Positions 880-24,198 of a stretch of 64,000 nt of DNA are shown in pieces (within the stretch, counting starts at the first letter, position 1; each line of letters opens with the position of its first letter). Below the pieces are notes generated by a model. It did not search any database and was not told the DNA's origin. It saw nothing but the letters and a program-made list of their open reading frames with translations. The DNA is from Macrostomum lignano (lineage: Eukaryota), in assembly GCA_002269645.1 (NCBI GenBank), contig NIVC01001503.1, forward strand, positions 1-64,000. Reading direction: 5' to 3'. The position numbers and the translations under genes are program-made.

Positions 880-1445
880 ACTATGGATAAAGGGAAATCC
901 CTGTTGCTATGCGACTGGTGGTATTTACTGTAGCTAAGGGGAATCCCGGTTGCTGTTTGACTGAGATTTACTGTAGCTAAAGGGAATCCCAGTTTCTATG
1001 TGACTGGGATTTACTGTAGCTAAAGGGGAATCCCTGTTGCTATGTGACTGGAGTTTACTGTAGCTAAAGGGGAATCCCGGTTGCTATGTGACTAGGATTT
1101 ACTGTAGCTAAAGGGGAATCCCTGTTGCTATGTGACTGGGGTTTACTGTAGCTAAAGGGGAATCCCTGTTGCTATGTGACTGGGGTTTACTGTAGCTAAA
1201 GGGGAATCCCGGTTGCTATGTGACTAGTGGTGTTTACTGTAGCTAAAGGGAATCCCTGTTGCTATTCTATGTGACTGGGGTTTACTGTAGCTAAAGGGGA
1301 ATCCCTGTTGCTATGTGACTGGTTTACTGTAGCTAAGGGGAATCCCTGTTGCTATGTGACTGGGTTTACTGTAGCTAAGGGGAATCCCTGTTGCTATGTG
1401 ACTGGGATTTACTGTAGCTAACGGAATCCCGGTTGCTATGTGACA
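880..1445. repeat. Minisatellite, 42-44 bp unit (gggatttactgtagctaaaggggaatccctgttgctatgtgact)
   Basis: About 13 tandem units. The unit is a dimer of related ~22-mers (ctgtagcta/ctgttgcta). It begins about 40 bp past the Sec24 stop. Confidence 0.95.
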
Positions 1446-1483
1446 AGCGATCGCGTCTCTAAAAGAATCCCATTAGTCTCGCA

Positions 1484-4400
1484 TTACCCAAGAACATGTT
1501 TCTGCAAGTACTGAAGAAATTCCAAATAGGACATGCTCGAATCTGTCCGATCCTCAATCAGATACGGCGTCAGGGCAGCCATCGAAGCAGCTGACGAGGT
1601 CAGTTTCAATTTAACCACCGAACGAGGCCGGGTCGATCGGCGCGCAGTCGGTCGGAAAAGCGCGCGCCCTCGTCGCTAGCAGTTGAGCAGCTTCAGCCGA
1701 GCCGGTGGACGGTGGCAAGACTAAGAAAATCTTTAGCCCAGCATCCAGTAGGTAGGTTCCGCCCGGCTCCATCTGGCTGGCGCTCGGATGCAGACGAGGC
1801 GGCGATGATGGAGGCTGGGAGGCTGGCTGCTTGGAATCTGTTTCCGCTGGCTGTGGCCACAGGTGCAAGGCGTATAGTGAGGGCAGCAGCTGCTGCAGCA
1901 GGGAGCACAGCGGGCTGGTTCGCAACTGAAGCCGAGAATAATGCATTTGAGACGTGAGTGGCGAGTGCAATTCGTTCTTCATGTGTTGGTTGCTAAGAGA
2001 CGGTTGCAAACGGGTTGTTTCCTAAGGAGATGGCTGCTAATGGTTGTTTTCTAAAGGTTTGGTTGCTATGAGACCGTTGCTACTGGTTTGGTTGCTAAGA
2101 AACTGTTGCTACTGGTTTGGTTGCTAAGAGATGGTTGCTAGTATGTTGGTTGCTAAGAGATGGTTGCTAAGAGACCATTACTACTAGTTTGGTTGCTAAG
2201 AGACGGGTCCACGACAATTGACTGCCACAAAATGACTGCGGACAAAATGACTGCGGAGCAATTTGACTGCCGACAATTTGACTGCCGACAAAATGACTGC
2301 GGCAATTTGACTGCCGACAAAATGACTGCGGCAATTTGACTGCCGACAAAATGACTGCGGAGCAATTTGACTGCCGACAAAATGACTGCGGAGCAATTTG
2401 ACTGCCGACAAAATGACTGCGGAGCAATTTGACTGCCGACAATTTGACTGCCGACAAAATGACTGCGGAGCAATTTGACTGCCGACAATTTGACTGCCGA
2501 CAAAATGACTGCGGAGCAATTTGACTGCCGACAAAATGACTGCGGAGCAATTTGACTGCCGACAATTTGACTGCCGACAAAATGACTGCGGAGCAATTTG
2601 ACTGCCGACAATTTGACTGCCGACAAAATGACTGCGAAGCAATTTAACTGCCGACAATTTGACTGCCGACAAAATGACTGCGGAGCAATTTGACTGCCGA
2701 CAATTTGACTGCCGACAAAATGACTGCGGAGCAATTTAACTGCCGACAAAATGACTGCGGAGCAATTTGACTGCGGACAAAATGACTGCGGACAAAATGA
2801 CTGCGGACAAAATGACTGCGGACAAAATGACTGCGGACAAAATGACTGCGGACAAAATGACTGCGGACAAAATGACTGCGGACAAAATGACTGCGGACAA
2901 AATGACTGCGGACAAAATGACTGCGGACAAAATGACTGCGGACAAAATGACTGCGGACAAAATGACTGCGGACAAAATGACTGCGGACAAAATGACTGCG
3001 GACAAAATGACTGCGGACAAAATGACTGCGGACAAAATGACTGCGGACAAAATGACTGCGGCAGTTTGACTGCCGACAAAATGACTGCCAAAAATGACTG
3101 GCGACAAAATGACTGCCAAAAATGACTGGCGACAAAATGACTGCCAAAAATGACTGGCGACAAAATGACTGCCAAAAAACACTCCAGGCTCTGACCGTAT
3201 TTATGCAAGGCTAGCAATGCTTTTTACATGAGCAAAAATGCAAGCTACATTTGGCTTTCAACAATTCGTGCATGTATATCTACTAGTAAAATTAGAAGCG
3301 TCATGTCAAAAAAGAGAAGCGAAGTCATGTCAAACATAAAAGGCGTCAAGTAAAACATAAAAGAAACTTCATCAAACATAAAAGCAGCGTAAGGTAACAC
3401 ATAGAAGAAACGTAATCTAAAATATAAAGGAAGCGTCATTTAAAAATGTTGACATCTTGGGATGCTAAGGCTTACGGCGGCAATTGCTGCGATTTCGAGG
3501 CTTACTGGGGAATTGCTAAGATGTCAAGTCTTACAACGGGGAATTGCTGAGATGTCAAGACAAATAGGATATACATTAATAATTTTCGTCTCTTGCTTGT
3601 TGGCCGCCCCGAAGGGGGCGCAGGATTGCTACCAATGTTCAAACTGATCTTTTGCATGTAGCTGTGTTTAATGAATGCTGTTTATAGAGTTTTTTTTCTC
3701 CCATGTCATATTAATCTCATACTTGAATCTTATTGATTCTTTCAGATTTTTAAAAAATGTCACATACTCGTCCTATCAGAAAAGCTTTATTAGGCCTAGT
3801 CAAAGCTAAAGTTAATGATACGCTAGCGCGCGGCTATAGCTATATAAAGAGCATTCATGGAACACAGCTTCATGTGGAGGATCCGTTTGAACATTAGTAG
3901 ATATACATGCACGAATTGTTGAAAGCCAAATGTAGCTTGCATTTTTGTTCATGTAAAAAGCATTGCTAGCCTTGCATAAATACGGTCAGAGCCTGGAGTG
4001 TTTTTTTGGCAGTCATTTTGTCCGCAGTCATTTTGTCCGCAGTCATTTTTGGCAGTCATTTTGTCCGCAGTCATTTTTGGCAGTCATTTTGTCCGCAGTC
4101 ATTTTTGGCAGTCATTTTGTCCGCAGTCATTTTGTCGGCAGTCATTTTGTCCGCAGTCATTTTGTCCGCAGTCATTTTTGGCAGTCATTTTGTCCGCAGT
4201 CATTTTGTCGGCAGTCATTTTGTCCGCAGTCATTTTGTCGGAAGTCAAATTGTCGGAAGTCAAATTTTCGGAAGTCAAATTGTCGAAAGTCAAATTGTCG
4301 GCAGTCAAATTGTCGGCAGTCAAATTGTCGGCAGTCATTTTGTCGGAAGTCAAATTGTCGGCAGTCAAATTGTCGGCAGTCAAATTGTCGGCAGTCATTT

Positions 4401-7400
4401 TGTCCGCAGTCATTTTGTCGGAAGTCAAATTGTCGGAAGTCAAATTGTCCGCAGTCACTTTGTCGGAAGTCAAATTGTCGGAAGTCAAATTGTCAGAAGT
4501 CAAATTGTCCGCAGTCATTTTGTCCGCAGTCATTTTGTCCGCAGTCATTTTGTCCGCAGTCATTTTGTCCGCAGTCATTTTGTCGGAAGTCAAATTGTCG
4601 TAGACCCCTAAGAGACAGTTGCTACTAAGTTGGTTGCTAAGAGACCGTTGCTACTGGGTCGGTTGCTAAGGAGAGCGTTACTAGTGGGTTTTGGGTAAGT
4701 TGCTACTTCAAGTACAGCAAAAGTTTCATTCGTAGGATTGCAACAAAAAATCAGATTACGGGCGCAGCCCCCCCCCACAAAAAATTTACCTCGGCCAAAG
4801 CAGCCGCTCTTTCGTCCAGCTGTCCGACACTGGGCCGGAATGCGGGCCACTTGAGCAGCGCCAGGATCAGCAGCGGCAGCAGTCGAATGTTGGGAGGCGA
4901 CCAGAGGCCACCGGCGCCGCGCTGCCCGGTGGCCCGAGCGTAGGCGGCCAGCGGATCGGCTGCGGCGTTCACCAGCGCGTCGCGAGCGTCCGACAGGCGG
5001 TTGGCGCCGGTTATGATGCGCTCGGCGCCGATTTGCGCCAGAAGGCCGATAATCTTTAATGAAAAGATTCGATTTTGATAATTCGGTTAGGTGAATCGGC
5101 TGTCAAGGATTTGGTGAATGGCTGTTTATGATTTGGTGAATTGCTGTTTACAAATTTGGTGAATGGGCTGTGTTACGATTTGGTGAATGCGCTGTTTATG
5201 ATTTGGTGAATGGGCTGTTTATGATTTGGTGAATGGCTGTTAACGATTTGGTGAATGGGCTGTTTATGATTTGGTGAATGGCTGTTAACGATTTGGTTAA
5301 TGGCTGTTTATGATTTGGTGAATGGGCTGTTTATGATTTGGTGAATGGGCTGTTTACATTTGGTGAATGGCTATTTATGATTTGGTGAATGGGCTGTTTA
5401 TGATTTGGTGAATGGGCTGTTTACATTTGGTGAATGGCTGTTTATGATTTGGTGAATGGGCTGTTTACATTTGGTGAATGGCTGTTTACGATTTGGTTAA
5501 TGGCTGTTTATGATTTGGTGAATGGCTGTTTACGATTTGGTTAATGGCTGTTTATGATTGGGTGAATGGCTGTTTATGATCCAAGTTGCTTGAAAACGGC
5601 AGTCACGCTATCACAGCAGCTTTGAACTTAAAAATATCTCACCGCCCGCTGGTCGGACCCGGCGAACACATCCTCAATCCGGGTAGCAACCGGCAGTCCC
5701 AGCGTGTGCACTCGATCCTCCGCTCGCCCTTCCGCCCAGTGTACAGCAGAGCGGCCTGGAACACCACCGGCTCGCTGGCTCCCGCGGTGCCGGCGCCATC
5801 GCCGACAGCCAGCTGGATGGCGAATCCGGCGTCCGGACTAGCGCAGGGCAGCGCCGCCAAGTCGGTGGCGCGAACGAAACAGGAGCCGTAGAAGGCGGCC
5901 ACGCTGTAGCCGTTTGAGCAGCGGACCCGGAGCACAGCCTGGAGAATTAGGGCGATTCTGGGGTGGTTCAGGGCGATTCCTAGGGTGGTTCAGGGGCGAA
6001 TCTTTGGGATGGTTCAGGGGCGATTCGGAGGGTTATTCAGGGGCGAATCTTTGGGATGGTTCAGGGGCGATTCGGAAGGTTATTCAAAGGCGATTCGGAG
6101 GGTGGGTTCAGGGGCAATTCTGAGGGTTATTCAGAGACGATTCGGAGGGTGGGTTCAGGGGCGATTCGGAGGGTTATTCAGGGACGATTCGGAGGGTTGT
6201 TCAGGGGCGATTCGGAGGGTTATTCAGGGACGATTCGGAGGGTGGTTCAGGGGCGATTCTGAGGGTTATTCAGGGGCGATTCGGAGGGTTATTCAGGGAC
6301 GATTTGGAGGGTGGTTCAGGGGCAATTCTGAGGGTTATTCAGGGCGATTCGGAGGGTTATTCAGGGACGATTCTGAGGGTGGGTTTAGGGGCAATTCTGA
6401 GGGTTATTCAGGAACGATTCCTAGGGTGGTTCAGGGCAATTCATAGGATGGTTCAGGGCGATTCATAGGATGGTTCAGGGCGATTCTTGGCCTCCAAAGC
6501 AATTCCTCAAAGCTATAACAGAGACCTCTAATCCCAGCTTGCGAGTGAGATGCCGGCCAAGATCCGCAGCCAGCCGGTCCGCATCGTCGGGCAGGCGCGG
6601 ATAGCGGTGCACCCGGCCGGAGGAGTACACGGCTATGGGCATGACCGAGGCCAGGTCAGTGTGACCGGGCCCGACGCAGAACAGATCAACAGACAGCTGG
6701 GCGCTGCAACAGTCTAACGCCAGGCGCTTGTAATAGTCAGTGGCCGGCTGGCCAGCCAAGTCGTCCGAGTCTGATCCGGCCGGACCGGACAAGGCGCCGG
6801 GTCCGACTGACGGACGGGAGGCCAGAAACAACAGTAGACGGCCGCCGCTGGACTGGGCGAGTCTGAATACAAGTAAATTGACCGATTAAATACCCGTGTA
6901 TTACTGGCAGTAGGTGGTTAACGAATATCACTGTCACAATTGATGAATGATAGCGACGAAAAGTAAAAAACTGACAGAGATTGACCTGTCCACAAGAGAC
7001 ACAAGACAGTCTACAAGAGACACAGGCCAATCTACAAGAGACACAATGATCGAGCTACAAGAGACACAAGCCAATCTACAAGAGACACAATGATCGAGCT
7101 ACAAGAGACACAAGCCAATCTACAAGAGACACAATGATCAAACTACAAGAGACACAAGCCAATCTACAAGAGACACAATGACCAAGCTACAAGAGACACA
7201 AGCCAATCTACAAGAGACACAATGATCGAGCTACAAGAGACACAAGCCAATCTACAAGAGACACAATGATCAAGCAACCAGAGACACAAGCCAATCTACA
7301 AGAGACACAATGATCAATCTACAAGAGACACAATGATCAAGCAACCAGAGACACAAGCCAATCTACAAGAGACACAATGATCGAGCTACAAGAGACACAA

Positions 7401-10400
7401 GCCAATCTACAAGAGACACAATGATCAAGCTACAAGAGACACAATGATCAAGCTACAAGAGACACAAGCCAATCTATAAGAGACACAATGACCAAGCTAC
7501 AAGAGACACAAGCCAATCTACAAGAGACACAATGATCGAGCTACAAGAGACACAAGCCAATCTACAAGAGACACAATGACCAAGCAACCAGAGACACAAG
7601 CCAATCTACAAGAGACACAATGATCAATCTACAAGAGACACAATGATCAAGCAACCAGAGACACAAGCCAATCTACAAGAGACACAATGATCAAGCAACC
7701 AGAGACACAAGCCAATCTACAAGAGACACAAGCCAATCTACAAGAGACACAATGATCGAGCTACAAGAGACACAAGCCAATCTACAAGAGACACAATGAT
7801 CGAGCTACAAGAGACACAAGCCAATCTACAAGAGACACAATGATCAAGCAACCAGAGACACAAGCCAATTTACAAGAGACACAATGATCGAGCTACAAGA
7901 GACACAAGCCAATCTACAAGAGACACAATGATCGAGCTACAAGAGACACAAGCCAATCTACAAGAGACACAATGATCGAGCTACAAGAGACACAAGCCAA
8001 TCTACAAGAGACACAATGATCGAGCTACAAGAGACACAAGCCAATCTACAAGAGACACAATGATCAAGCAACCAGAGACACAAGTCAATCTACAAGAGAC
8101 ACAATGATCAAGCAACCAGAGACACAAGCCAATCTACAAAGACACAATGATCAAGCTACAAGAGACACAAGCCAATCTACAAGAGACACAATGATCAAGC
8201 TACAAGAGACACAGGCCAATCTACAAGAGACACAATGACTAAGCAGCCAGAGACACACAGGCCAATCTTTAAGACAGACCTGTGAGCTATGGCCAAAGCC
8301 GATCCCAGACAGCAGCCGGGCACCGCAGGGAACTCCAATTCGGGCAGCGATTCCAACAATTCAACGATGGCGTCGCGACATTCGGCCACGGGTACTAGAA
8401 GACCTTCGGGCATTGGTAGGTCCGAATCGCCGTCCAGATCAGGCATGGCCAGCAGGCTGGGACGGGGTCCGTCCAGTTTGTACAGGTGCAGAACGCCATT
8501 GAAGGTGATGACGGCCAGCTGGGTGCGGGTGTCGCCTGGCAGACGGTCCAGACAGCGAAGCAGAGTCTGACTAACCGCAGTCAAGTAGGCAGTTGCCGAC
8601 TTGGCAACGGCCGGGTCTGACGACAGAACCTGGGACACGTCCAGCGCCAGGATGTAGGTTGCGGGCGGCGGCGGCCGAACAGAATACTCCTGGGTGGCGA
8701 TGAATTCCACTGTGCCGTTGCGAATCTCTGGCCGACGGCTCGGGTCGCCGTAGGTCTGCGGGGGCAATAGGTTTCCAGCGGAGCAGTTGTCTTAAAACTA
8801 CTCGGACCAAAATATGAGTTCGTACTGGTCTAGGTGATTCTCTAGAGGGGCTGGGGTCTGCAAACTTTTTTTACCTGAAGGGCCAGATAAAGAATTCAGC
8901 TCATGGCTGCGGGCCAGATGAGAGTACAAGGAGAGAATAAAATATAGACGAGAGACGAGAGAAGAGTAAGGGGAGAGAAGAGAGCTGAGAAGAGGCACAA
9001 ACATTGAGCGGGCCGGATTGCTATTGTGAAGTTTCAAAGGACCCGAGGGACAGATAAAGGGATAAAGGCTAGTTTTCTACCCATTCTAAATGTATAATGT
9101 GGCATCCCGCCGATCTCTGATTGGTGTAGAACGAGTGACAGAACTTGATCTAGGTACAATAGAACATTTATATATAAATACCGTATATGCATAAAAGCGT
9201 TGATCTTAAAGCATTTAAGCGCGTATTATTTTTTTACAAGGTTTCTGCGAAAGTAAAAGTCTGCCTTACCTGGGACATGGGATCATAAAGAAACTCTTCT
9301 GGCAAATCGTTGTCAAGAAAGCAGAGACTGCAGCGCCATCTCTGTTGGCTGGAGAAGCGCACGAAAGGATTAATATAGGCCCGGCAATCTCGGCAGCGAA
9401 CGATGACGTTGGCCTGAATGACTGCCAGGCTGCGCAGATCCTTAAACGGGTGCATTGCCAGGCCTAACGGTAGGCGAGATCGGCGCAACAACTCGGCAGT
9501 GGCCGGCACGGCGTTCATTGTGCAGGACATGACATCCGGATTGCAGTTGGCCTCAGCCGGGAACGAATGGCCCAACGGCGGCGGAGCGACCGTCTCTATG
9601 GGCTCGGAGCCGTGCGTCCGCAGCAGCTGCCGGTCGCGCAGAAGATTCACTGAGTTTTCGCGATGCTGAGCGCTTGCAGTCGACCACTGCGGCTGCTGAA
9701 GCGTCGGCGGCGAAGTCATTTGTCGAGGCATCGGTCCAACGGGCAGCGGCGGCGTCGGCGCTACGAATGGCATTGGTGCTGGCGGCGCGGGGACAAATGA
9801 AGGGGGCGAAGGTGCGGCTGCAGATATTGGATGCATCGGCGGTTCTGGAGGTCCAATAGGCCGATGGCCAGGTGCCGTTGAGCTCGATGGCATCATAGGA
9901 GGTGGCGGAGGTCCAACAGGTTGATGGCCAGGTTGCGGAGGTCCAACAGGTTGATGGCCAGGTGGCGGAGGTCCAACAGGTTGATGGCCAGGTGGCGGAG
10001 GTCCAACAGGTTGATGGCCAGGTGCCGTTGAGCTCGATGGCATCATAGAAGGTGGCAGAGGTCTAACAGGTTGATGGCTAGGTGCCGTTGAGCTCGATGG
10101 CATCATAGGAGGTGGCGGACATCCAACAGGTTGATAGCCAGGTGCCGCTGAGCTCGATGGCATCATAGAAGGTGGCAGAGGTCTAACAGGTTGATGGCTA
10201 GGTGCCGTTGAGCTCGATGGCATCATAGGAGGTGGCGGACATCCAACAGGTTGATAGCCAGGTGCCGCTGAGCTCGATGGCATCATAGGAGGTGGCGGAC
10301 ATCCAACAGGTTGATAGTCAGGTGCCGTTGAGCTCGATGGCATCATAGGAGGTGGCAGAGGTCCAATAGGTTGATAGCCAGGTGCTGCTGAGCTCGATGG

Positions 10401-10922
10401 CATCATTGAGGACTGTGGACCTACATATCGATGGTCAGGTGTTGCTGAGCTACCAATTCTCATCTGGTGTACCTGAGACGTCAAGTTTGCAGCTGCTGTC
10501 TGAGTTGAAGGCACTTCAAATGATGAAACTTGAGGTGGTTGTCTCAACTGAGAAGGGTGTGGAGCTGACACTGAGGAAGATGTTGATGGACAAGGCATTG
10601 AACTTTTTGGCAAATGACTTTGCAGAGGCAATGGAGGTGCAGCCATACCTGCTTGTGCAGATGAGGAATTCAGACCATGCAAGTTCATCTGATTGGGCTG
10701 ATTAGACAACATAGACCTCACAGGTGTTGGATGCAATAAAGAGCCATGAGGAAGTTGTAATGGAGGTGTAGAGGCAAAAATAGGCCTTGTAGGGTTAGCT
10801 GATGTTTGACTTGGCTGAATTTTAGGCATAGTTTCAATAGGCATAAATGATCTAGCTGGCTGAGCTTGAGCAGATGACAATTGAAGGCTCCCATTGGGTC
10901 TTGTTGGTTGCTTTGGCTGCAT
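1484..10922 (-). CDS. SEC24: COPII coat subunit Sec24A/B-like, 6 exons, with apparent frameshifts
   Basis: Exons (minus): 10922-9270, 8755-8280, 6862-6526, 5938-5643, 5053-4790, 1925-1484, all with GT-AG boundaries. Motifs: zinc finger CRDCRAYINPF...WRCSLC, RPPPPATYILALDVS, LRVRCSNG, LLPLLILALLK, C-terminal LIEDRTDSSMSYLEFLQYLQKHVLG*. There is a 1-bp loss at ~5714 and further frame change(s) at ~1610-1740. Confidence 0.92.
2020..2204. repeat. Minisatellite, ~29 bp unit (ggttgctaagagaccgttgctactggttt), resuming at 4608-4700 after the foldback insertion
   Basis: The same unit lies on both sides of the 2205-4607 element, in Sec24 intron 5. Confidence 0.85.
2205..4607. mobile_element. Non-autonomous foldback-type DNA transposon (long TIRs made of 14-15 bp tandem repeats, 9-bp TSD)
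   Basis: Termini gggtccacgacaatt / aattgtcgtagaccc are inverted. TSD ctaagagac at 2196-2204 and 4608-4616. Arms are built of gacaaaatgactgcg / gacaatttgactgcc units. The inner unique inverted repeat (3179-3285 vs 3895-4003) has one mismatch. The ~610 bp spacer has no convincing ORF. Confidence 0.88.
5090..5580. repeat. Minisatellite, 22-23 bp unit (gatttggtgaatgggctgtttat), fills Sec24 intron 4
   Basis: About 22 tandem units between the exon edges at 5053 and 5643. Confidence 0.95.
5945..6485. repeat. Minisatellite, ~23 bp unit (tcaggggcgattcggagggttat), fills Sec24 intron 3
   Basis: Tandem units span nearly the whole 5939-6525 intron. The overlapping ORFs are repeat artefacts. Confidence 0.95.
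6995..8255. repeat. Minisatellite, alternating 21 and 23 bp units (44 bp dimer; ctacaagagacacaagccaat / ctacaagagacacaatgatcgag), Sec24 intron 2
   Basis: About 1.26 kb of tandem units ending about 25 bp from the exon edge at 8280. Confidence 0.95.
8852..9052 (+). mobile_element. hAT-type MITE, partial copy (Sec24 intron 1)
   Basis: It starts tggggtctgcaaacttttt and contains gagcgggccggattgctattgtgaagtttcaaaggacccgaggg, shared with the copies at 15512 and 50657. Confidence 0.75.
9880..10420 (-). repeat. Coding tandem repeat in Sec24 exon 1 (60 bp/20 aa PPPMMPSSSTAPGHQPVGCP and 30 bp/10 aa PPPGHQPVGP)
   Basis: Near-identical 60-bp and 30-bp periods are in frame in the Pro-rich N-terminus. Confidence 0.9.
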
Positions 10923-13893
10923 TCCTCTTATATCTATAGTCTAGATTATATGAATAGCTTTCTGAAAAGTGAATTTATGTTTTTAATCTCGAGTATAAGT
11001 TGTTTCTTTAATCTATGATATGAACAATTATTATTTCATAATTTAAAACCATTTATACTTGTGCTATATAATTTGATATATTTGCACTAGCATAGGCCTA
11101 GGTTTCCCTGTTAGAATTTTTGCTCAAAATGCATAGACGAAAATTAGGATTTTAATATTTATAGTCCCTAATTAAAAGGGATGGCAATAAACATATTGGT
11201 TATTATAATTTTGAGCTACTTTACTATGTAAGGGCCTATCACACAATGCCATAATTGGTGTAATGTAGACTAAAGTACTATAAAACCTTGGTGAAATGCA
11301 ATATATTAGAAAGGCAATAAACATAAAAATGTCAGTTTTTATCAAACTAAATTGCTAGTATAATGCAACATGCCATGCTACAACCTAGCACCCTAGTGCA
11401 ATAATCTTTAGCATGATATGACAAGTGACTAATTAAGTATATGAATAATTTATATAATACTAATCAATTTATCTATCTATGAAAAAGAGGATATAAAAAT
11501 TATTTTCAACAAGAGTGATATTCACATTCACTTCAGTTTGTATTATAATTTTTTCTATAAAATATACCATGTTTATCATAAAATAAATTTTTTTGCTTTA
11601 AATCTTAGATTAACCCAACCGATCAAATCAAAGGAGTTGTAAGAACCTTTCAGTTGAATAGTTTCGAGGTCCAAAAGGGTCTGTCAACTTAGCCTAGGCT
11701 CATAAAGTGGAGCCCGACACCCAAGAAACATATGTACATTGTACACAAATGATACGCTATTCTGCTCACAGTGACACCAGAAAGCTGGACTTGAGAAAAA
11801 AATTACAAAAATTGAACCTGGGATAAAAGAGAACAATCAAGGGGACAATTAGGGACTCCACCTGATAAGCTTAAGTTTACATGATGAATGATAGTAATCA
11901 TTGTTCTTAGAAATTATACTTTTTAAACTAGAAAATATCTTTAGCAGCAACACGTAAATTAGGCTGAAAAAAGTATTCACCAAACATTTTTTAAATACAT
12001 CAAGATTTTTTAGATTTTTTATTTAGTGATGTACAAACAAATAAAATATTTTGTTTTAGCCAACAATTTAAATTATAAAACCGTTGGAAATTTTTTCCAC
12101 CTTAGGCCCCCCCCTCTACTACACTAGTGAAGGCCTAGTGAAGTGGGCTGATTGGCAAATCCAGGGGCCATAGTCCTCTCAGCTAGGATCGAAATAAATC
12201 GCCACATTTTTTCTTGTTCTGACGACTTTTGACCTAATTATACTACTTTTAGTCGCTTTTCGAATGTTGTACTAAGTCCAAGGGCCTATATACTATATTT
12301 GTTGCTTAGGCCGTAGGGCCTATTCTACTATACTAGGTGGGCCTAATTGTTTGCATCATAATTGTTTTGAAATTTTTTTTTAAATTTGATTTTTTATGCA
12401 TATTGGCAAGTTATAAAACCTTTATTTAAATATATAGCATTTAGTAAATTAAATTGACAACTTTTAAACTAGCCAAGGCTAAAGATTTAAGTTATTATTA
12501 TTAAGTCTAAGACTAATTTAACTAATAAAATTTAGTTAATATTAGTTATTTAGTCAGGTAAAATTAATTAAAAGATTTTGATATTATAATTGAGACAAAA
12601 TTGGCTAGGCCTAGGCCTATTAAAATTTCTTAATCCCATCAAATAAGATTGCTAAAAATAATATAATATTTTGTCTTTAGTTTTATAATTTAAGGCTAAC
12701 TTAATTTAGTTTAGTAACTGCAATTAGTTATAATTTAGTTTGGTTTAAAATAGGGTTTAAAAAACTTTTTATCTGTAGTGTAAGGCAAAATAAAGAACCT
12801 AATATTTGATTGATAATTGCAAGCTAGTGTAAGAAAAAGAAAGAGAAGAGACATAAGAAATAGGTAAGAAAGGAAAAACATAACAAGGTAAAAAGTGAGA
12901 AGACTAGGGCCTTAATAAGAGAAAAAAGACGCAAAAAGGAAAGAAAATAGAAAAAAGAGAAAAAAAGCAAAACAAAGAAAGTGTAGATTAGAGAACAAAG
13001 AGCTAAGAAGAAAGGCAAATCTTGAATAAGCCTGATTGCCATTGTAACATTTCAAAGGACTTAAAGGCTGGATAGAATGGCTTTGTAAGCTGCATATGGC
13101 CTATAGGCCATGGCTTTATAAGCTGCATATGGCCTATAGGCTAGAGTCTGCTGACCCTTGGACTTGGTCTATGTTGGCATGGCCTAATGATGATTTCCTA
13201 TTTAATATTCATTTAACCTTTAATGTCTTTTTTGCTCTTTATAATAAAGCTTTCAGTTTTTATATGATAAATTGGTTTCTTTGTCTAATCCTAAAAGAAT
13301 AAAAAAGAGGATGAAAGTACTACAAGAGAATACAATACAATATTTAGGTAGTTAAATAGATATTTAAGGTATTAAATATTTAGATATAAAATATTTAGTA
13401 AAATATTTAGATTTATCAATATAGGTAGGCCTAATGATATATAGTATATACATTTGGCAAAAATTCAATCAAAATTGCTTAAGAATTGCAATCTCTAGAG
13501 CATTATAGACAAGTAAACATACAAACAAATATTAGAGATTTAGTATAACTTTAGTATAACTTTGTTAGTTATTTTAGAAGTCCCATCATAATACTTCTAT
13601 TGGTTTATTAGGCACTTGATAAGACAAGTTATTTCTATTCATGGTTGACAAAGTAACAAGTGTTATATCTTAAATCTTAGGTGAATGTTTTTTATATCAC
13701 AATTGTGTGTCTCTAGAGTTGACAATTTATTTTTAAAAAAATAAAGAGACAAACTTATGGCCATGGAATCTATATATGTAATGTTTGTTTTCCATGGATA
13801 TAATTCTGAGATGTCCTTGTAACTGTAGTTGGCATAATATCCCACTGCAGCTTGTTGCCATATGCTATACAAACACAAATTTCAGGACTCAGA
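10481..13893. other. AT-rich, CpG-depleted domain between divergent Sec24 and NF-YB (probable bidirectional promoter region)
   Basis: About 15 CpG in 3.4 kb by eye. I saw none in 10481-10989 or ~12932-13893. Flanking exons are CpG-dense. Confidence 0.8.
12755..13140 (+). mobile_element. Heavily GC-eroded copy of the hAT-type MITE
   Basis: cttgaataagcctgattgccattgtaacatttcaaaggacttaaaggctgga aligns to cttgagcgggccggattgctattgtgaagtttcaaaggacccgagggccgga of the other copies, mostly by G>A/C>T changes. Confidence 0.7.
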
Positions 13894-14422
13894 CGAGCAC
13901 TCTGGCTCCGGGTTTGGGGCAACGCCAGGCGCGACAGCCAACGCCGGAGGAGGCAGTCTGGACGATGGCCGACCGATTGGCCGGTGCTCGCCAATCCGGG
14001 ACCAGGACCGCTTCCTGCCCATTGCCAACATATCGAAGATTATGAAGCGAACAATACCGGAGACTGGCAAAATCACTAAAGAGGCGAAAGAGTGCGTGCA
14101 AGAGTGTGTGTCCGAGTTTATCTCCTTTGTCACGTCCGAAGCGTCGGACAGATGCCAGGAGGAGAAGCGGAAGACAATGAACGGCGAGGACATCCTGACG
14201 GCGATGCAGGCTGTCGGCCTAGACAGTTACATTGAGCCGCTGAAAGTCTACCTGATGAAGTATCGGGAGGCCAATAAATTGGAGGCGGCCAACGAACGGG
14301 CCGCCAATCCGCAGGGCGGCGGCGGCACCGGAGCAGCGGGCGGAGCCAGCGGCGGTGGCGGTGACGACGGCGCTGTGGGTGGAGGCGGAGCCGGCGGCAC
14401 CGTGTTTGTCTCTTTCAACTGA
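13862..14422 (+). CDS. NFYB: Nuclear transcription factor Y subunit beta (histone fold)
   Basis: [17 protein letters not shown]...[43 protein letters not shown]. The true start is uncertain (acceptor-like tttcag ends at 13885). AATAAA at 14501. Confidence 0.95.
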
Positions 14423-14781: not shown

Positions 14782-15085
14782 GGGGTTGTAGCTTAGTTAG
14801 AGCGTCGGACTCACGACTGATAGATAGGTCGGGGGTTCGATTCTCGACCCACTCGGAACAATTTGTATCCTTGAGCAAGACACTTAACTCTGCATTGCTT
14901 CAGTTCACCCAGCTGTAAAATGGGTGCCAGCATTAGCTGGGGTAATTGAGGCTGTGTGGCGACCCCCCAGTCCTTGGACTGAACAGCCGTACGCAGCCTT
15001 CAGATGCGCCGCGCAATAGCTGCGGCTGAGCTGTTTATTGCACATCTGCACATTGGGGCAGGTGTAATCAATTATTATTAATTTT
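14782..15085 (+). mobile_element. Full-length tRNA-derived CORE-type SINE
   Basis: A-box-like tagcttagttagag and B-box ggttcgattct. The CORE-like segment ccttgagcaagacacttaactc...cagttcacccagctgtaaaatggg resembles the MIR core. It ends in an att-rich tail. Confidence 0.85.
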
Positions 15086-15511: not shown

Positions 15512-15705
15512 TAGAGGTCGGCAAACTTTTTTACCTCAAGGCCAGAGAGAGGAAAGGAGAAGGAATGGAAGATGAGAGGGGAGAGATAGCATGAGAGAAG
15601 AGATAAGAGGAAAGAGAGAGCTGAGAAGAGACAGAAACCTTGAGCGGGCCGGATCGCTATTGTGAAGTTTCAAAGGACTCGAGGGTCGAAGTTTGCCGAC
15701 CTGCT
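15512..15705 (+). mobile_element. hAT-type MITE, short internally deleted copy
   Basis: Inverted ends aggtcggcaaact / agtttgccgacct. The internal sequence is shared with the other copies. No clear TSD. Confidence 0.75.
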
Positions 15706-16136: not shown

Positions 16137-16645
16137 CTCATCATTAGCCAGGCTAGCTCTGGTTTAGCCTCAGCCAGCTGCCATCATTAGCCAGGCAGCT
16201 CTGGTTTAGCCTCAGCCAGCTGGCATCATTAGCCAGGCTAGCTCTGGTTTAGCCTCAGCCAGCTGGCATCATTAGCCAGGCTGGCTCTGGTTTAGCCTCA
16301 GCCAGCTGGCATCATTAGCCAGGCTGGCTCTGGTTTAGCCTCAGCCAGCCGGCATCATTAGCCAGGCTGGCTCTGGTAGCCTCAGCCAGCTGGCTATGCC
16401 AGGCTGGCTCTGGTTTAGTCTCAGCCAGCTGGCATCATTAGCCAGGCTGGCTCTGGTTTAGCCTCAGCCAGCTGGCATCATTAGCCAGGCTGGCTCTGGT
16501 TTAGCCTCAGCCAGCTGGCATCATTAGCCAGGCTGGCTCTGGTTTAGCCTCAGCCAGCTGGCATCATTAGCCAGGCTTGCTCTGGTTTAGCCTCAGCCAG
16601 CTGGCATCATTAGCCAGGCTGGCTCTGGTTTAGCCTCAGCCAGCC
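16137..16645. repeat. Minisatellite, 43 bp unit (gcatcattagccaggctggctctggtttagcctcagccagctg)
   Basis: About 12 units. The unit is a 20+23 dimer, each half beginning ttagcc. It ends about 45 bp before the AG at 16691-16692. Confidence 0.95.
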
Positions 16646-16704: not shown

Positions 16705-19210
16705 ATGCCGAACTACTGCCAGTGCCCGCCAGATCATTCCGGCCTCTGGGCCTCCGTGTACGTCGCTGGGGTGCCGTATTCGAAGTCCGCCCGCTCCCGT
16801 GTTCAAATTTTTTTCTCGGCCGCCGGCCGAATCATGTCCGTTCGAGTTTGCGCTCCGAGAAAGGATAATTTTGGGGGGTGAGTGCAACTGTCCAATTCGG
16901 GCTGGTATTGTAAAGTCCTGAAGTTATTCATGAGACTTCTCCGATTAGACACCAGTGAAGATTTCATTTCTTAGCGATCTGTGTGATATAATCCCATCAT
17001 AACCATTTATGGAAAGTTTATCTCATCATAACTAACGATTTATGGGGTGGGGATTTTATCCCGTAATAACGAACCATTTATGGGGATTTTATCCCATCAT
17101 AACAACATTTATGGGGAGTTTATCCCATCATAAATAACCATATATGGGGAGTGTATCCCATCAAATGAATATTTTCTACTTCCGCTTTCTTCGCCCTGCC
17201 TCTGCATTCTCTCGCGTCGCCACCCTGCACCGCAGGACCGGCTTCGCTTTCGTTGACTTCGCCTGTGCGCACGGCGCCTACGCCGCTGTGCTGCGATTTA
17301 ATGGCAGCGAATTTCACGGCTGCCGCCTCTCAGTCCAGCTGGCTGAGAGCGGCCTCCGCAACCAGCTGCAGCCGGCGCCATGGTCTCTGGCTGGCGGCGC
17401 TGTCAATGGGCGCCAGAAGGAGTCCAGCATCTATCTGGTGAATGCCCGCGCCCTGAGTCGACAGCACCTATTTACAGAGGTGCTCAAACTGGTTAAGCCG
17501 CTGGGCAAGATCGGACAGATTAAGATTAATTGGAATCCTGTCCGAGAGTTGTGGAATGCCTTCGTCTATTCGCCTGGTGAGCGCCGCTGGTGTTTGATGT
17601 TCGATTCTTGACTTGTCTGGCATTTTCTGCTTTTAGATTTCTTTGAAGGAAATTGGATTTTTCAGCAACCTCTTCAATGATCATCGGGAATTTAGCACCC
17701 TGCTTGTACAGAAAAGAGTGACACTATCTAAAGTTGAGTTTATAAAAATGAGCAGTAACTGAGGCGCAAGATCCAGACGGTTGTATTTATAAGACATTAA
17801 CTAGGGCGGGGGGGTTTAAGTGCAAGATAAGGAGGGGCAGAGTGCGCGACTAAGGAAAGATGCGAGATTCAAGAGCCAATCAGAAGGCAACGAGGGACAG
17901 AGATAAGAATAACAAGATTAGACTGGCCAGAGAGGGAGAAAAGACAAAGTAAACAGAGACAAGTGCAGATAAACTAAAAAATGACAAAGATTCAGAAAAT
18001 CGCGACACCCCTGTTACTTGTACAGTCAGGAATGTCAAATTCGGGCCATAGACAGATTCCTAGGTCCCAATTTATGCCCGTATTTACTGTTAGAAGGGCC
18101 ATAGGTTTGCTGATTTTTATGCAAACTTATATAATAATAATAATAATTGATTACACCTGCCCCAACAGGAAGATTTGCAACCAACAGCTCAGCCGCGGCT
18201 GTTACGCATCTGAAGGCTGCGTACGGCTGTTCAGTCCAAGGACTGGGGGGTCGCCACACACCCTCAATTATCCCAGCTAATGCTGGAACCAATTTTACAG
18301 CTGGTTGAACTGAAGCAATGCAGAGTTAAGTGTCTTGCTCAAGGACACAAATTGTTTCGGGTGGTTTGAGAATCGAACCCAGACCTTTCAGTTGATATTT
18401 TAGTATCGATACAATATATAAGACAATATACGAGTACTTGGTGTTTTGGAAGTCGCATGCTTTCTGTATCTGTAGCATAAAACATTTATTGCTTAAATCC
18501 AAAAGTAAGCCGCTTTGAGAATACCTCCTACCCCCAGACAAGTTTAAACAGACTTAACCAGAAAAAAGAGTTTTGTGGATTCCCAGAATCGACTGAGCTA
18601 AGGTTGTCCTTCCCGATCTGCAGATCCCAGCTTCGCCGAGCGCGCCGTCTCCAAGCTGAAGGGCGTCCGAATCTTGGACTCTGAGGTGGAAATTGGCGCC
18701 TTCAGGCAGGCCGAGTCGCGCCCAGTGAAAACCGGTCGCGGCGGCGGCGGCGGAGCTGGCGGAAAGCCCGACGCCATGTCGCAGCCGCTGTGCGAGCTAT
18801 CCGAAGCTGAGCTGCTTCATCAGCGCCGGTTGGCAGTTGAGGCTGGCACCGGCTTCGCTGCCGATAATCCGCTCCTGTCGAACAGTCGGGCAAGCCAACG
18901 GCTCAAGCGCGTTGTTGACCGCCTAGCAGAGCTGCTCTGCCTGGTCCCGTTCCAGGCCAGTCGGCTGCTGCTGCTGCCAGACACTGAGCCGCCGCAGCTC
19001 ACTTTGATGAAGGCCTCGAAGTCCAAGACAATGACAACTGGTGCGTCGGCAACTTCAGCGTCAACGGTGCCAAAGTCTAGAGACGCATCATCGGCGATCG
19101 AGGAGACCAGCGAGCTGGAGATCAATTACCGGCTGATGTGCTCTGGGGAGCAGTTTGCTCGCTCATCCGACCTGCTGGCCGCCCAGTGCGCCGCCGAGGA
19201 CTGGCAGTGA
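16705..19210 (+). CDS. RNA-binding protein with two RRM-like domains, 3 exons
   Basis: Exons 16705-16877, 17236-17576, 18624-19210 join in frame via GT-AG. RNP2-like VYVAGVP and RNP1 TGFAFVDF. A second RRM-like unit runs SIYLVN...AERAVSKLKGVRILDSEVEI. Confidence 0.75.
16990..17165. repeat. Degenerate minisatellite, ~29-34 bp unit with internal dyad (tttatcccatcataa...tttatgggga)
   Basis: About 5-6 units in intron 1 of the RRM gene. Confidence 0.75.
18125..18392 (-). mobile_element. CORE-type SINE copy (5' slightly truncated)
   Basis: Reverse complement of the 14782 copy, from the tail (taataataa) to the B box (gaatcgaaccc). Confidence 0.85.
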
Positions 19211-21593
19211 AAGTGTTACACTGACCTTGGTAAGAAGTTCCAATTCACTGCTTAGAAGATTCGCAGAGAGAGTAGGCCTTTTGTTGTATAATAACCAATT
19301 ACTTATTTTAAGTAGTATGGTTTTATTAAAATTGCATGCGTTGCATTTTTCCGTTCCCAGTTTTTATTGTCGTTTCTCTACTGCAAAATCAGACCTGCCA
19401 AGCCTCTCTATCCGGTCCTCGGGTCCTTTAAAACTTCACAATAGTTTAGATTAGCAAACCATAACCCGGCTTGCGAAACCTAAGATCCCTTGCGAGAACA
19501 GGACCTGTTTAAGTGCAGTTGGAACTTTTATAGTGCTCCCAGTGATAAACTTAAACAGGAAATCAGGAAAACAGGACAACAGGAAAGATAGAGAGGTATG
19601 GAAATTCTTGCAAACTTCGCCAAAGACATGACACAAGCCGGAATACGATTGTCCTGAGGCTTCACATTCGTACTGCAAAGATCAGCTTGAATAGTCTGTT
19701 TGCGCACGAGACTTTAACGCCCGTTCGTCAGGAAATTTTTTTATTCATTATCTTATTGCATTCGTTTAAAATGATATTATACAGTGTAAAATTCAGCACC
19801 CTCTTGGGGAGAGCATTTAATAATTAATAATCATTATAATCCTCACTCAGCTCTATTCTATCCTCTGTCATCTTCTCTGTCATCTATTCCCTCTCCTTTC
19901 TGGCAATAATACTAATACTATTGTATATTGTAATTAGTAAATAAAAATCGCATTTAATGTCAAGTTTTCTATTGTTCAAATAAATAAGCTCAACGAGCTG
20001 CGCGCATTTTCGACAAGCAACTATTAAAATATCATTTATAGCATATCCGATTTGATTTTATTTTGATATACACAAACTTATTTATTCACTTCTAATTTGA
20101 TTGAGAGGTAGATGAAGAGAGCTCTCAAAACTGCGCGAAGTACTTTTGTGTACAGAAGAAAAGAAAGCAGAGTTGTTAGCTTTTTATGCACACGATCAAT
20201 TTAAAGTAGAATGGCCCTATTCATGGGAGCAAGATCATGATTACAATAGGAGCGAGCCAGGCCTCACTGCGTGGGCCATTGAATCATTCTTTTTCGCTTT
20301 CGACAGTGCGACTGACTGGTTCGAAGGTACGCCAGTGCAAACGAAAGATTTATACGAGCGGGGCGCAAGGCAAGCTCAGAGAAAGGTGGACGAGAATTAA
20401 CAAGCATTTTTGAGAACTGAAGAATAGCCTGTCTAATGGAGAGCCTGGGCTTAGGGCTCAAATTGTTATTACAAGCAAGTGTACACATACTTTTGGTGCT
20501 GTAATACTTTGAAAACATTCACAAATAGTATCGTACGTGCATAGGCATTGCTGCAGATTAGCAAACAGATTTTTCAACTGTTTCAAATGAGCAAGGGCAT
20601 ATATGTGACTCAATATAACCAATATAAGAGCCGTACGCTCGTAGCAGGACTCAAAATCAACATGTAAAGCGTTGAACAAAAGTCAACAAACGACAAGCTT
20701 TGAGTATAAAAAAGCCATTAGACTTTATCAACTACGGACAGGTTTCCTCAGATTATACTTACAAAAATTGTTTGTCTTCATATTTATATCCATTTTCGTA
20801 GCGAAACAAGGATATAAATACGGGTAAAACTTACTGTACACTTGATTTAGTGTGCGAGTTACTTTAAAGTCGACCAGATATTTTATTCTGAACTATAGCA
20901 AGTTCTCGGGCCATCTTAGCGGGCCCTCAGCATCAGATGAAAGTCAAACCAGGGTTTTAGTCATTGACTGTCCCTGATTTTGCTTCACACGGAAAGAAAA
21001 CTGGCATGGCTAACAGTTCATGTGCAGCTATGAGATATAGTTGCTCGTGCGAGAAGATACGTACATGTAATATGGTCTGAGAAATGCTACATTAGACATA
21101 TGGAGGGAGACACTTCCACGCAAAATGGACCTCGACTTCTGCTGCTGATCCAAGGTTTGCTGCTGCAGTCAGGTGAAGGTCTGCTGTATCCGTGCAAAGT
21201 CGCTTTTTGAATGCTGGCCCTCAGAACTCTACGGCCCTATACGAGTATAGCAAGTCAGAAAGCTTTTCGTATTGTCTATGGCCTAACCCATTCTGTAGGC
21301 ATTTAACTTTGGATGTCTGTTTCCTGCAACTTTGTAGCTAGTTAGCTAGCCAGCTAGGCCAGATAAATTCTACAACGCTTTTAATTGGTCGAGCCATTTA
21401 TTTGGCCCGGTCAGATAAATTAACCATAGACTAAAAGACCGGGACCTAAAGGGGGATAAATTCTGAAAGCTGCTGAGCTTCTAGATGTCTAAAAATCGAT
21501 TCGGCCTCCAAATTTCGGGGTCGTGTCCACTTCCATACATCCAAGCGGTGTTTCCAGGCCGGTCAGAGTTGGGGGCAACAGCTTATCCTGGGG

Positions 21594-22906
21594 TCAAACT
21601 CGCCAGTAATCCGGAGCCGGTTGTGGCGGACTCCTACTACCCAGTGTGACATCGGCGTTGTACCGACTGCGCACCGCTGGAGGTCCGGCTGCGCCGCTAC
21701 TGAATCCGTTCTGGTAGTGTGGTTGCTGCTGCGGTTGGTACTGCAGATGCCGCGACAGCTTGGGGTGGTGATGGTGGTACATCTTAGTGTCCGAATAAGT
21801 GTATGTGTGCATACTCTTGGCGCCGTTGACAGCGACTGATCTGGACGATTGCGGAGTCGTCGTGTTGACTGTTAGCGCCGATGTCGCGGCCGAAGCAGAT
21901 GAGCGTGAGCGCGACACCGAGTGCCGACTCGAGGATTTGATGCCAAACAACCGCCTCAGCGAGAAACGCTTGGATCCGCCGCTTCCTTGCGCAGGCGCGG
22001 ACGCGGTTGTTGCCGCGGCTGGCAGCTGCTGACGATGCTGGAGCCCATCGCCGGTGACCAGCGGGCGAGTGTGCACCGCCCGGTGCAGCACAGCCGATGG
22101 CTGCAGACTGCGGCGCTGGTCGTGGCCTTCATGAGGATGATCGAAGTCAGAAGTTGAACGCGATGGAGGCGGCGGCAGCGGCTGCCCTCTGCCTGGCCAA
22201 GGACCGCGGGGCGCCATGGTGAAAATCACCCGACCGCCGCCCGTATTCAGCTGTGTGGAGCGGAGAGTTGTGACCATCATTTAGTCAGGCTGGTGTTCCA
22301 ATCGGCTTCAGCATGATTCAGTTTCTACGAGTATCAGATACATGTACCATGTTCTTGAACTTTAGACACTCCTGAAGTCCAGAGCCACCATCCTGAAGTG
22401 TAGGGCTACCCTCTGGAAGTTATATAGAGTCAACCTATGGAAGTGTAGAGCTACCCTCTGGAAGTATAGAGCTACGTACCCTCTGGAAGTGTAGAGCTAC
22501 TCTCTGGAAGTGTACAGCTACCCTCTGGAAGTGTACAGCTACCCTCTGGAAGTGTAGAGCTACCCTCTGGAAGCGTAGAGCTACCCTCTGGAATCGTAGA
22601 GCTACCCTCTGGAATCGTAGAGCTACCCTCTGGAAGAATCTCACTCACCTCAAATTCGCTGTCTGCATCGCCCTGAGCAGCGCTATTGCCGAAGCGCAAT
22701 CGACCTTCGCCATCTCTACGATCGGCGCCGTCAGCCGCCGCCACCGCTGCCTCGTCTTCCTCCGGCAGCAGCCAGTTGCTGCCCCATCCGGCGCCAGCTG
22801 CGCGGGCTTTCGGCGCCGCCAGCGTAACGTCGTCAAATCGACGCTCGTCGGCCGAATTGGTTGGCGGAAACGGCGAGCACCAGCGCCTGTCGTTGGCTGC
22901 CGACAT
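21594..22906 (-). CDS. Uncharacterised low-complexity protein, 2 predicted coding exons
   Basis: Exons 22906-22649 (ATG just after a cag acceptor; donor GAG|GTGAGT) and 22250-21594 (acceptor cacag) join in phase 0. Codon style is GC-rich like the neighbouring genes. No family recognised. Confidence 0.55.
22390..22636. repeat. Minisatellite, 21 bp unit (gtagagctaccctctggaagt), intronic
   Basis: About 11 units ending about 12 bp from the donor at 22648. Confidence 0.9.
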
Positions 22907-23542
22907 TTTCTGAAGTTCTCTCGGCAAACCAGATGCCTTTTGTGAGCTTCACCTTATCCGCTAATAGATTGTGCTTCTTTTATGCTGAAGTCTGTTTTGA
23001 TTCTCTTAACGCCTCCTGCTTTTAGCAATGAATAATAAGTTTTCAAACTCTTCTCTTCACTTTTTAATGGCTTCGCTGCATTTTAGCCAAGTCGAAGGCC
23101 AAGATCGAATGGGATTGGCCCAGCCTGACCTCAGTCAGCTATTCTCGAAGCTGAAAAATATTTGTCTCTTACTTTCTGCGAAATCTAAAAAAGCCCCGAC
23201 AACAGAGTAGAAGTTTCGCCACAATCAGCTCAGGAAAGAAAAAAATTCGTGGGGTAACTAGTGTAGGTAATCCACCCACCTACCCACCCACCCACCTGCC
23301 CTGCTTGACACAGCCTGCCCGCGGGACAAAAAAAACCACAATCCAAGCCGCGCGCACAGAGACCACAGAGAGACAACATCATGGCTTTCTGGAGTAATAC
23401 ACGAGATGGAAAAGCAAAAGACTGAACAAAATAATACAGGCAACGCCCGCGAGCTGAGCACAAAATTTTGTTAACCAGCATCTCATCTGTGGCTGAGTGC
23501 ATTGCCCGGCGATTGCAGAATGAAGTGCAGAGGCAGCCTCAA

Positions 23543-23579
<37 letters not shown>

Positions 23580-24198
23580 TTAGTTTACCATTTTTTATTC
23601 TAGTTTCAAGTTGTCCAATCCGACATGCCATCTTCGAGTGTAAGCTGCTCAGTGTACTCTGCAACGCCAAGCCACGCTAATTCTCTACTTTGCAATGAAC
23701 TGAAAAGGGCCGACTCTTGAGAGCGGGGTTATCATTTCGATTGAAGTTGCCCGGAGTAGAAGTACGAACTCTCGTTCATGGCTCTTGGTGACCTCCGTTT
23801 GTATTTTCTTCTGTAGCAGAGTGAGCTACAGCATAGTGACTTGTCGCTGGCATATCGCTTTTAAGCAGTTTTTGCTCTATTAGGGGCGTATTGGATTGCC
23901 GAAAGTACTGGGTCGCTTTCAAATCAGATGCAGACAGGTACTCGTATTACTGTACGATAGCTATTGTGCATGCAATTCGATTTTCAATTTTACGCCATCA
24001 ATTAAAATATTACGCACTTGGTTTGGTAGTATCTAAATCAGTAGTAGTTAAAGCGTTTTTACATATATTTTTTTCTCGAAGCTACATGTATAAGGCTTCA
24101 TAATTTGAACTCTTCATTAGCTAAAGTATTAAGCTTGCTTACAGACGCAAAATGAAGCTTGGTACAATAAATTCATAGAGGATGTCTTGGGAGCTGAT

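Follow-up and report, generated by a model that had tools for sequence, protein, structure and literature searches.

CpG-depleted, AT-rich kilobase blocks upstream of genes in the flatworm Macrostomum lignano

The window analyzed here, the whole 64-kb stretch of bases 1-64000 of contig NIVC01001503.1 (assembly GCA_002269645.1) from the free-living flatworm Macrostomum lignano, contains a block at 10481-13893 that lies between the divergently oriented genes for Sec24 and NF-YB, reaches into the coding sequence (CDS) of Sec24 and is severely depleted of CpG dinucleotides. In its 3413 bp (GC 0.311), 15 CpGs are observed, as an earlier note on this DNA had estimated, and 81.2 are expected from base composition, which gives an observed-to-expected ratio (o/e) of 0.18; with the o/e of the whole window (0.76), 61.7 CpGs would be expected (Poisson P about 1e-12). 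GpC is enriched (o/e 1.55 in this block and 1.55-1.86 in the CpG deserts of this study overall, while their CpG o/e is 0.02-0.18), so the deficit is specific to CpG. With moderate confidence, we explain the block as an old unconstrained spacer at an AT-rich equilibrium in which CpG loss is regionally accelerated, probably by methylation. The parts of the block, its immediate neighbors and the second desert of the window are as follows, where GC3 is the GC content at third codon positions.

9843-10480, minus strand: codons 148-360 of Sec24, the rest of the low-GC3 part of exon 1; GC3 0.28-0.35
10481-10922, minus strand: codons 1-147 of Sec24 (ATG at 10922); 0 CpG against 20.2 expected
10923-11599: left arm of the spacer; GC 0.26, 2 CpG against 11.3 expected, o/e 0.18
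11600-12330: central block of the spacer; GC 0.36, 12 CpG against 23.4 expected, o/e 0.51
12331-13885: right arm of the spacer, on the NF-YB outron side; GC 0.27, 1 CpG against 27.4 expected, o/e 0.04
13886-14422, plus strand: NF-YB coding exon (178 amino acids); CpG o/e 1.08, GC3 0.71
32652-35288: second desert; GC 0.257, CpG o/e 0.02, CpGs only at two end positions in 2.6 kb

The desert at 10481-13893 (desert 1) is present in four of the four assembled copies of the locus, which are carried by the window and by contigs NIVC01002907.1, NIVC01001371.1 and NIVC01000399.1, and it is therefore no assembly artefact. The sole comparable desert within the window is that at 32652-35288 (desert 2); other CpG-poor kilobase bins, at 7-8 kb, 40-41.5 kb and 53.8-54.9 kb, are minisatellites whose repeat unit lacks CpG. 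Spacers elsewhere in the window are CpG-normal at a GC of 0.40-0.43 (o/e 0.79 at 19211-21593, 0.76 at 22907-25596, 0.91 at 26697-28036 and 0.90 at 29264-32439), and individual 500-bp bins with a GC of 0.35-0.37 hold 12-21 CpGs. Given such CpG-normal spacers and AT-rich bins nearby, AT-richness alone cannot explain the desert.

Desert 2, where three haplotypes allow substitutions to be polarized, is at compositional equilibrium. The polarized changes comprise 15 from G/C to A/T and 18 from A/T to G/C, with per-site rates of 0.0120 and 0.0050, respectively, and correspond to an equilibrium GC (GC*) of 0.29, which is close to the current GC of 0.257. Desert 1 is represented by two haplotype groups only, and an exact-protein look-up of NF-YB for an outgroup returned only M. 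lignano contigs, so polarization was confined to desert 2; unpolarized tests of CpG change between haplotypes are confounded by gains from the large TpG/CpA pool and were not used as evidence of hypermutability. The polarized CpG changes of desert 2 are two gains and one loss, and two gains together with a near-zero standing count require fast ongoing loss of CpG. This requirement bears on an alternative that invokes age only, in which CpG decay would be uniform and modest, the deserts would be the oldest unconstrained non-repetitive DNA, the rest of the locus would be young or under selection, and no regional methylation would be involved. We consider this alternative unlikely. Compositional equilibrium of the desert is in its favor, as are introns and other spacers that are full of young tandem repeats and the retention of CpGs by young insertions within the deserts (16 CpGs in a 711-bp element and about 30 in the insertions of copy L008, both described below). 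Besides the fast loss just noted, nearby unique AT-rich DNA with a CpG o/e of 0.8-0.9 speaks against it, and so do the repeats residing in the deserts.

Two resident repeats, one in desert 1 and one at the desert-2 edge, have been eroded by transitions, and CpG decay is accelerated specifically in one of them. They belong to a family resembling miniature inverted-repeat transposable elements (MITEs) with terminal inverted repeats (TIRs), and to a family resembling tRNA-derived short interspersed nuclear elements (SINEs).

12758-13075, plus strand: eroded TIR (MITE-like) repeat copy with a GA-rich middle, from alignment to the family copies
8855-9049, 15513-15688 and 50920-51221 (minus strand): better-preserved MITE-like copies, from alignment
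12834-12841: empty target site AGAGAAGA, filled in haplotype B (copies L001 and L003)
About 7394-8102 of L001: 711-bp TIR element, inserted into the older eroded MITE-like copy
13077-13141, plus strand: 33-bp tandem duplication, present as a single copy in haplotype B
35206-35475, plus strand: tRNA-derived SINE-like copy at the edge of desert 2, which has lost 14 of 15 consensus CpGs
14786-15048, 18208-18394, 36963-37133, 1-119, 48338-48481 and 26307-26389: other SINE-like copies, making seven in 64 kb

The three MITE-like copies outside the deserts are approximately 80% identical to each other and still keep their CpGs (GAGCGGGCCGGATTGC...CCCGAGGG), which indicates that CpGs are not hypermutable there and is difficult to reconcile with age only, while the copy in desert 1 has lost all consensus CpGs and reads GAATAAGCCTGATTGCC...CTTAAAGG. 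In the well-aligned 3' part of the desert copy, C>T/G>A changes are found at 4/7 CG, 4/11 CC, 4/10 CT and 2/8 CA sites, in line with the earlier statement that the element is eroded even in GG/GA contexts. Alignment to the three other copies likewise upholds the view that it belongs to a TIR repeat family and has decayed, with TIR-like ends GGGGTCTGCAAACTT and AAGTTTCAAAGGACCC; its hAT label is putative. An inverted-repeat scan of the eroded copy itself found no TIR, and no target-site duplication (TSD) is recognizable. In L001 and L003, a 711-bp non-coding element with 16 CpGs and TIRs of approximately 100 bp is inserted at the position corresponding to window site 12841. It is flanked by an 8-bp TSD (AGAGAAAA/AGAGAAGA) and thus has the features of a hAT-type MITE (TIRs, 8-bp TSD and no coding capacity), with TIR termini (GGCAATC...) that are atypical of hAT.

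In the desert-edge SINE-like copy, mutated sites number 17 of 30 at CpG (all transitions), 24 of 113 at other G/C and 10 of 119 at A/T positions; in the six other copies, the corresponding counts are 14 of 114, 30 of 420 and 19 of 448. The odds ratio of CpG to A/T sites is 14.3 for the desert-edge copy and 3.2 for the other six (p=0.015), so that, against the clock of A/T sites, CpG decay is 4.5-fold higher in the desert-edge copy, which weighs against age only; the excess at its non-CpG G/C sites is not significant. By context, the changes in this copy rank CG (54%) > CA (22%) > CC (16%) > CT (6%), and they are strand-symmetric. ARAGORN called a tRNA in none of the seven SINE-like copies.

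These heavily C>T/G>A-mutated copies, with non-CpG contexts included, might also be read as products of a directed defence against repeats, such as repeat-induced point mutation (RIP) or deaminase-driven editing of transposon copies. Fungal RIP blocks resemble the deserts in being AT-rich and in carrying transposon copies full of such transitions, and differ in that here unique DNA and a coding region are affected, the effect does not depend on duplication and CpG is preferred over CpA. Against this reading, composition is alike in the non-repetitive spacer and at synonymous positions in a single-copy gene, the changes are strand-symmetric, the remaining members of both families are intact and the deserts contain young insertions that are untouched. 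Between 10501 and 14000, only one of seven 500-bp bins has the RIP signature (TpA/ApT >=0.89, (CpA+TpG)/(ApC+GpT) <=1.03 and a composite index >0). No RIP pathway is known in animals, and we regard repeat defence as very improbable.

The depletion crosses from the spacer into Sec24, as the earlier note had described, and the affected CDS is part of the annotated protein in three of four gene copies (PAA54433, PAA83876 and PAA68793); the open reading frame (ORF) matches M. lignano proteins with 100% identity, and its N-terminal part is continuous with the rest of exon 1. The first 442 bp (10481-10922) are indeed free of CpG. When the amino-acid sequence was kept fixed and codons were drawn from the usage of other local exons, codons 1-147 were expected to contain 34.1±4.1 CpGs, with a minimum of 20 in 5000 simulations; NCA and NCT codons are used in place of NCG and NCC. 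These codons encode an N-terminal disordered region and have a GC3 of 0.29 and a GC content at the first and second positions of 0.53, a difference large enough to mark the N-terminus as genuine coding sequence. In 40-codon windows, GC3 is 0.25-0.35 for codons 1-360 (to about 9843), matching the equilibrium GC of desert 2, and then 0.53-0.80, so that the AT-rich regime covers the entire disordered N-terminus, about 1.08 kb. The CpGs of 9843-10480 sit in a young 30/60-bp tandem repeat at 9847-10406 with a unit identity of 87-97%, to which the first CpG left of the desert, at 10479, is also ascribed. Although 9270-9900 is CpG-dense as had been noted (62 CpGs), the transition is not the gradient that had been described and consists of two steps, a return of CpG at 10479 and a jump in GC3 at codon 360.

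At the other end, the first CpG beyond the desert is at 13894, 8 bp after the splice acceptor of NF-YB. The gene model of NF-YB begins exactly at a TTTCAG acceptor (AG at 13884-13885) without an ATG of its own, and the exon continues the reading frame of the ATG at the 3' end of the M. lignano spliced leader CGGTCTCTTACTGCGAAGACTCAATTTATTGCATG (PMC8629364). Judged from this arrangement, NF-YB is very probably trans-spliced, with its start codon donated by the spliced leader. In that case, the DNA to the left would be outron or promoter, the boundary would be an outron/exon junction and not the edge of a promoter, and the transcription start site (TSS) of NF-YB would be hidden. For M. lignano, RNA annotation and mapping of promoters for analysis of gene expression (RAMPAGE) data exist (PMC5730564).

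Haplotypes of the locus diverge most deeply in the deserts, which are also its parts most prone to insertion. Differences between the window and L001 are confined to 10900-13884 (98 in 2860 aligned bases, 3.4%), with zero differences in the left 6.5 kb and the right 1.1 kb, and differences between the window and L008 are dense from 32510 to 34877, that is, in desert 2, where L008 carries insertions of about 900 bp with about 30 CpGs. For the deeper pair of the window and L010, divergence is 4-5% outside and at most 8% inside desert 2. Over window positions 1-39000, multi-kilobase tracts without differences among the four copies alternate with tracts of 2-8% divergence, and the relationships among the copies shift along the locus; this mosaic results either from exchange between homeologues or alleles, by gene conversion or recombination, or from consensus polishing of the assembly.

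This pattern suggests a second alternative, a cold spot of gene conversion, in which GC-biased conversion or homogenization among the three or four copies of each locus in a hidden polyploid maintains the high GC and CpG of genic DNA, spares the deserts and leaves them to relax to an AT-rich equilibrium. The confinement of differences to the deserts and the recombinant mosaic of copy relationships are as this alternative would have it. By itself, it does not explain a CpG-specific deficit accompanied by GpC enrichment, and the 5' coding part of Sec24 is homogenized (one haplotype difference in 442 bp) yet CpG-free with a GC3 of 0.29. CpG-normal blocks at 15-17.5 kb and 31-32.5 kb are also unconverted (2-3.5% diverged in some comparisons), and the zero-divergence tracts could partly be artefacts of consensus polishing. 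A conversion cold spot on its own is therefore doubtful in our view, although it can act jointly with the old-spacer explanation, and a lack of gene conversion may contribute to the deserts. The deserts were never homogenized, yet they are not clearly hypermutated: divergence between copies is 2.4-4.8% in the deserts and 2-3.5% in other unhomogenized non-coding blocks. The hypermutated flank proposed in the earlier note is thus not borne out, since changes to and from G/C are balanced in desert 2 and the divergence is matched elsewhere; only the decay of CpG is demonstrably accelerated.

The same note had read desert 1 as an inverse CpG island, that is, a small protected bidirectional core promoter with flanks that promoter activity keeps CpG-free or hypermutated. 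Its descriptive parts hold, namely the depletion, the erosion of the repeat, the central position of residual CpGs (12 of 15 within 11600-12330) and the head-to-head genes, and its interpretive parts, namely hypermutation, a protected core and a link to divergent pairs, are not supported. The three residual CpGs of the arms are at 10990, 11138 and 12930, and those of the central block span 11620-12312. The central block (731 bp; 12 CpGs in the window copy and 15 in haplotype B) contains a CCAAT-type box, which is consistent with a promoter:

12148-12156: CCAAT-type box CTGATTGGC, within the central block

With a GC of 0.358 and an o/e of 0.51, the block falls short of a CpG island (at least 200 bp, GC at least 0.5 and o/e at least 0.6). 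It has no repeat matches elsewhere and no Rfam match, and Rfam and tRNA scans of the desert and the whole window found nothing. It is not conserved, includes the bin that is most diverged between haplotypes (6.6% at 11800-12199), differs between haplotypes by transitions at four of its 16 CpG dinucleotides and is no better conserved than the arms. A promoter role of the block is possible but unsupported. Desert 2 has no CpG-retaining core at all. Bidirectional promoters usually have TSSs less than about 1 kb apart, and the spacing of 2.96 kb from the Sec24 CDS to the NF-YB acceptor exceeds that. Five experimentally used promoter fragments of M. lignano contain CpGs (PMC5730564 supplement), which, at approximately 400 nt each, shows only that upstream DNA is not all CpG-free.

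The positions of the deserts relative to genes bear on the same reading. Other genes called in the window, together with the desert-like zone of the one independent locus compared (L011, contig NIVC01000415.1), are listed below.

16705-19210, plus strand: RRM gene
21594-22906, minus strand: gene for a 304-amino-acid protein
25597-26696, minus strand: gene for a 173-amino-acid protein
28037-29263, minus strand: gene for a 408-amino-acid protein (CDS start 29263)
36284 to 44097, plus strand: hnRNP K (CDS start 36284)
5950-8607 of L011: desert-like zone in a tandem spacer, 1.4 kb upstream of an hnRNP K paralogue

Annotation confirms that both deserts of the window lie between head-to-head genes, Sec24 (minus) with NF-YB (plus) and the 408-amino-acid gene (minus) with hnRNP K (plus), as had been noticed from the sequence. 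In the first 44 kb, these are the only two divergent spacers and both are deserts, while tandem and convergent spacers are not. In L011, however, the desert occupies a tandem spacer, and there is none in the divergent spacer of 6 kb, so the proposed link between deserts and divergent gene pairs does not hold there; across the window and L011, deserts occupy two of three divergent spacers and one of seven others, which is not a significant difference. Each of the three deserts is upstream of one gene or more, as the inverse-island reading would also have it. On balance, we judge that reading improbable.

Each of the two hnRNP K paralogues (64% protein identity) has a CpG desert 1-4 kb upstream of its coding start, and desert 2 was found to have no sequence homology to its counterpart at the L011 paralogue. 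A palindrome and, more generally, the motif GGCCTA/TAGGCC are also frequent in the deserts. GGCCTA/TAGGCC occurs 19 times in desert 1, where about 0.3 instances are expected, and shows no sign of constraint between haplotypes (4 differences against 3.3 expected). The palindrome TAGGCCTA is strongly concentrated within each of the three deserts or at their margins, and its flanks are unrelated, so these are independent instances of a motif and not copies of a repeat. The motif scan placed it as follows.

Window: 11093, 12606, 12612, 13426, 32511, 32823, 33026 and also 3791
L011: 5740, 5967, 6303 and 22830

For the explanation that we favor, an old spacer with accelerated CpG loss, we propose that the block consists of a promoter/outron region and, where the disordered N-terminus of Sec24 is encoded, of synonymous sites, and that it may have drifted to the AT-rich mutational equilibrium of the genome, at a GC of about 0.25-0.30; the great age of this DNA is what we infer from its composition. 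Within the block, C>T/G>A decay at CpG would be several-fold faster, relative to other sites, than in neighboring DNA. The most likely cause of this CpG-specific acceleration would be germline cytosine methylation confined to such blocks, probably reinforced by faster deamination in easily melted AT-rich DNA. Fryxell and Zuckerkandl in 2000 and Fryxell and Moon in 2005 (a paper cited in PMC5327563) are reported to have found that CpG decays faster in AT-rich DNA. The flanks would remain rich in GC and CpG for other reasons, being CDSs with GC-ending codons, young repeats or DNA homogenized among three or four copies. Localized germline methylation appears to be the most economical cause because DNMT1 and DNMT3 are retained in M. 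lignano, in which the level of 5-methylcytosine is low (5mC; PMC11292947, PMC9246332). The genomic pattern of 5mC in free-living flatworms is stated to be unknown (PMC9246332).

Several observations weigh against this explanation. At the NF-YB acceptor, composition switches abruptly within 10 bp, which is easier to account for by selection on the mature mRNA than by a mutational regime acting regionally; such a knife-edge would be expected if GC-ending codons were selected for in mature mRNA. The 5' coding part of Sec24 resembles the desert in composition but lacks the high divergence between haplotypes. The non-coding arms of desert 1 have no excess of TpG/CpA (TG+CA o/e 0.97-1.16; the ratio is 1.05 for desert 2 and 1.62 at the 5' end of the Sec24 CDS), unlike vertebrate bulk DNA. 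Each repeat test concerns a single copy, with a consensus built from non-desert copies, and the divergence of the desert SINE-like copy at A/T sites is twice that of the other copies, as age only would also predict; subfamily structure or a greater age of the desert copies could contribute to the repeat results. Finally, the o/e of 0.02 in desert 2 is below the equilibrium of roughly 0.15-0.2 that is estimated from the SINE-derived rates.

Compared with known systems, the deserts share with methylation-driven CpG decay, as in vertebrate bulk DNA and mosaic invertebrate genomes, a CpG-specific deficit with GpC intact, CpG>TpG/CpA transitions and an organism with DNMT1 and DNMT3, and with the mosaic genomes also the side-by-side presence of depleted and non-depleted compartments. 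They differ in that methylated compartments elsewhere are gene bodies (most invertebrates) or the whole genome (vertebrates), whereas the compartment here is a spacer of a few kilobases, intergenic or 5' to genes; the depletion is also more extreme (o/e 0.02-0.18) without TpG/CpA excess in non-coding arms, and methylation of it is putative. Like vertebrate CpG islands, desert 1 has a CpG-retaining block of 0.7 kb with CpG-poor flanks between divergent housekeeping genes, but the GC (0.36) and o/e (0.51) of that block are lower, the second desert lacks such a block, and the CpG-poor background extends only about 1-1.5 kb on each side, beyond which the DNA is CpG-normal. The deserts may resemble deamination-driven, isochore-like compositional domains in their AT-rich equilibrium (here GC* about 0.29), in CpG loss that goes with AT-richness and in shifts in composition within a gene regardless of function; the blocks here are on the scale of kilobases, not hundreds of kilobases, and have edges of less than 10 bp at the NF-YB acceptor.

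The literature searched yielded no account of blocks of this kind in M. lignano. The deserts could, tentatively, mark where germline methylation is mainly, or exclusively, located in a free-living flatworm. DNMT1 and DNMT3 would then perhaps be aimed at gene-upstream spacers of a few kilobases and spill into the first kilobase of some CDSs, with gene bodies unmethylated, a possibility that we put forward with low confidence; if true, this would be the inverse of the canonical gene-body methylation mosaic of invertebrates. Sharp-edged kilobase blocks with near-zero CpG in a CpG-replete genome provide named loci for direct tests of germline methylation, with young insertions in the deserts and the CpGs that remain there as suitable probes. 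The blocks also occupy upstream regions of the kind used as promoters in M. lignano transgenesis.

Elsewhere in the window, minisatellites with a period of 15-67 bp crowd introns and spacers (63 rows of Tandem Repeats Finder output in 64 kb), at 853-8268, 16139-16644, 39900-41483, 45592-46435, 53811-54914 and elsewhere, and several of them give rise to long spurious ORFs and CpG-free stretches. A mariner-type element at 37133-39032, within an hnRNP K intron, has an intact transposase ORF of 353 amino acids (37558-38619, minus strand) and is flanked by arrays of 18-19-bp tandem repeats. Its absence from two sister contigs identifies it as a young insertion; a protein search with its transposase found no M. 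lignano copies, the top match being only 65% identical. A remnant of the C-terminus of a mariner-type transposase (HHDNSALHTA...PYSPELALCDF) lies at 30885-31085, within the spacer left of desert 2.

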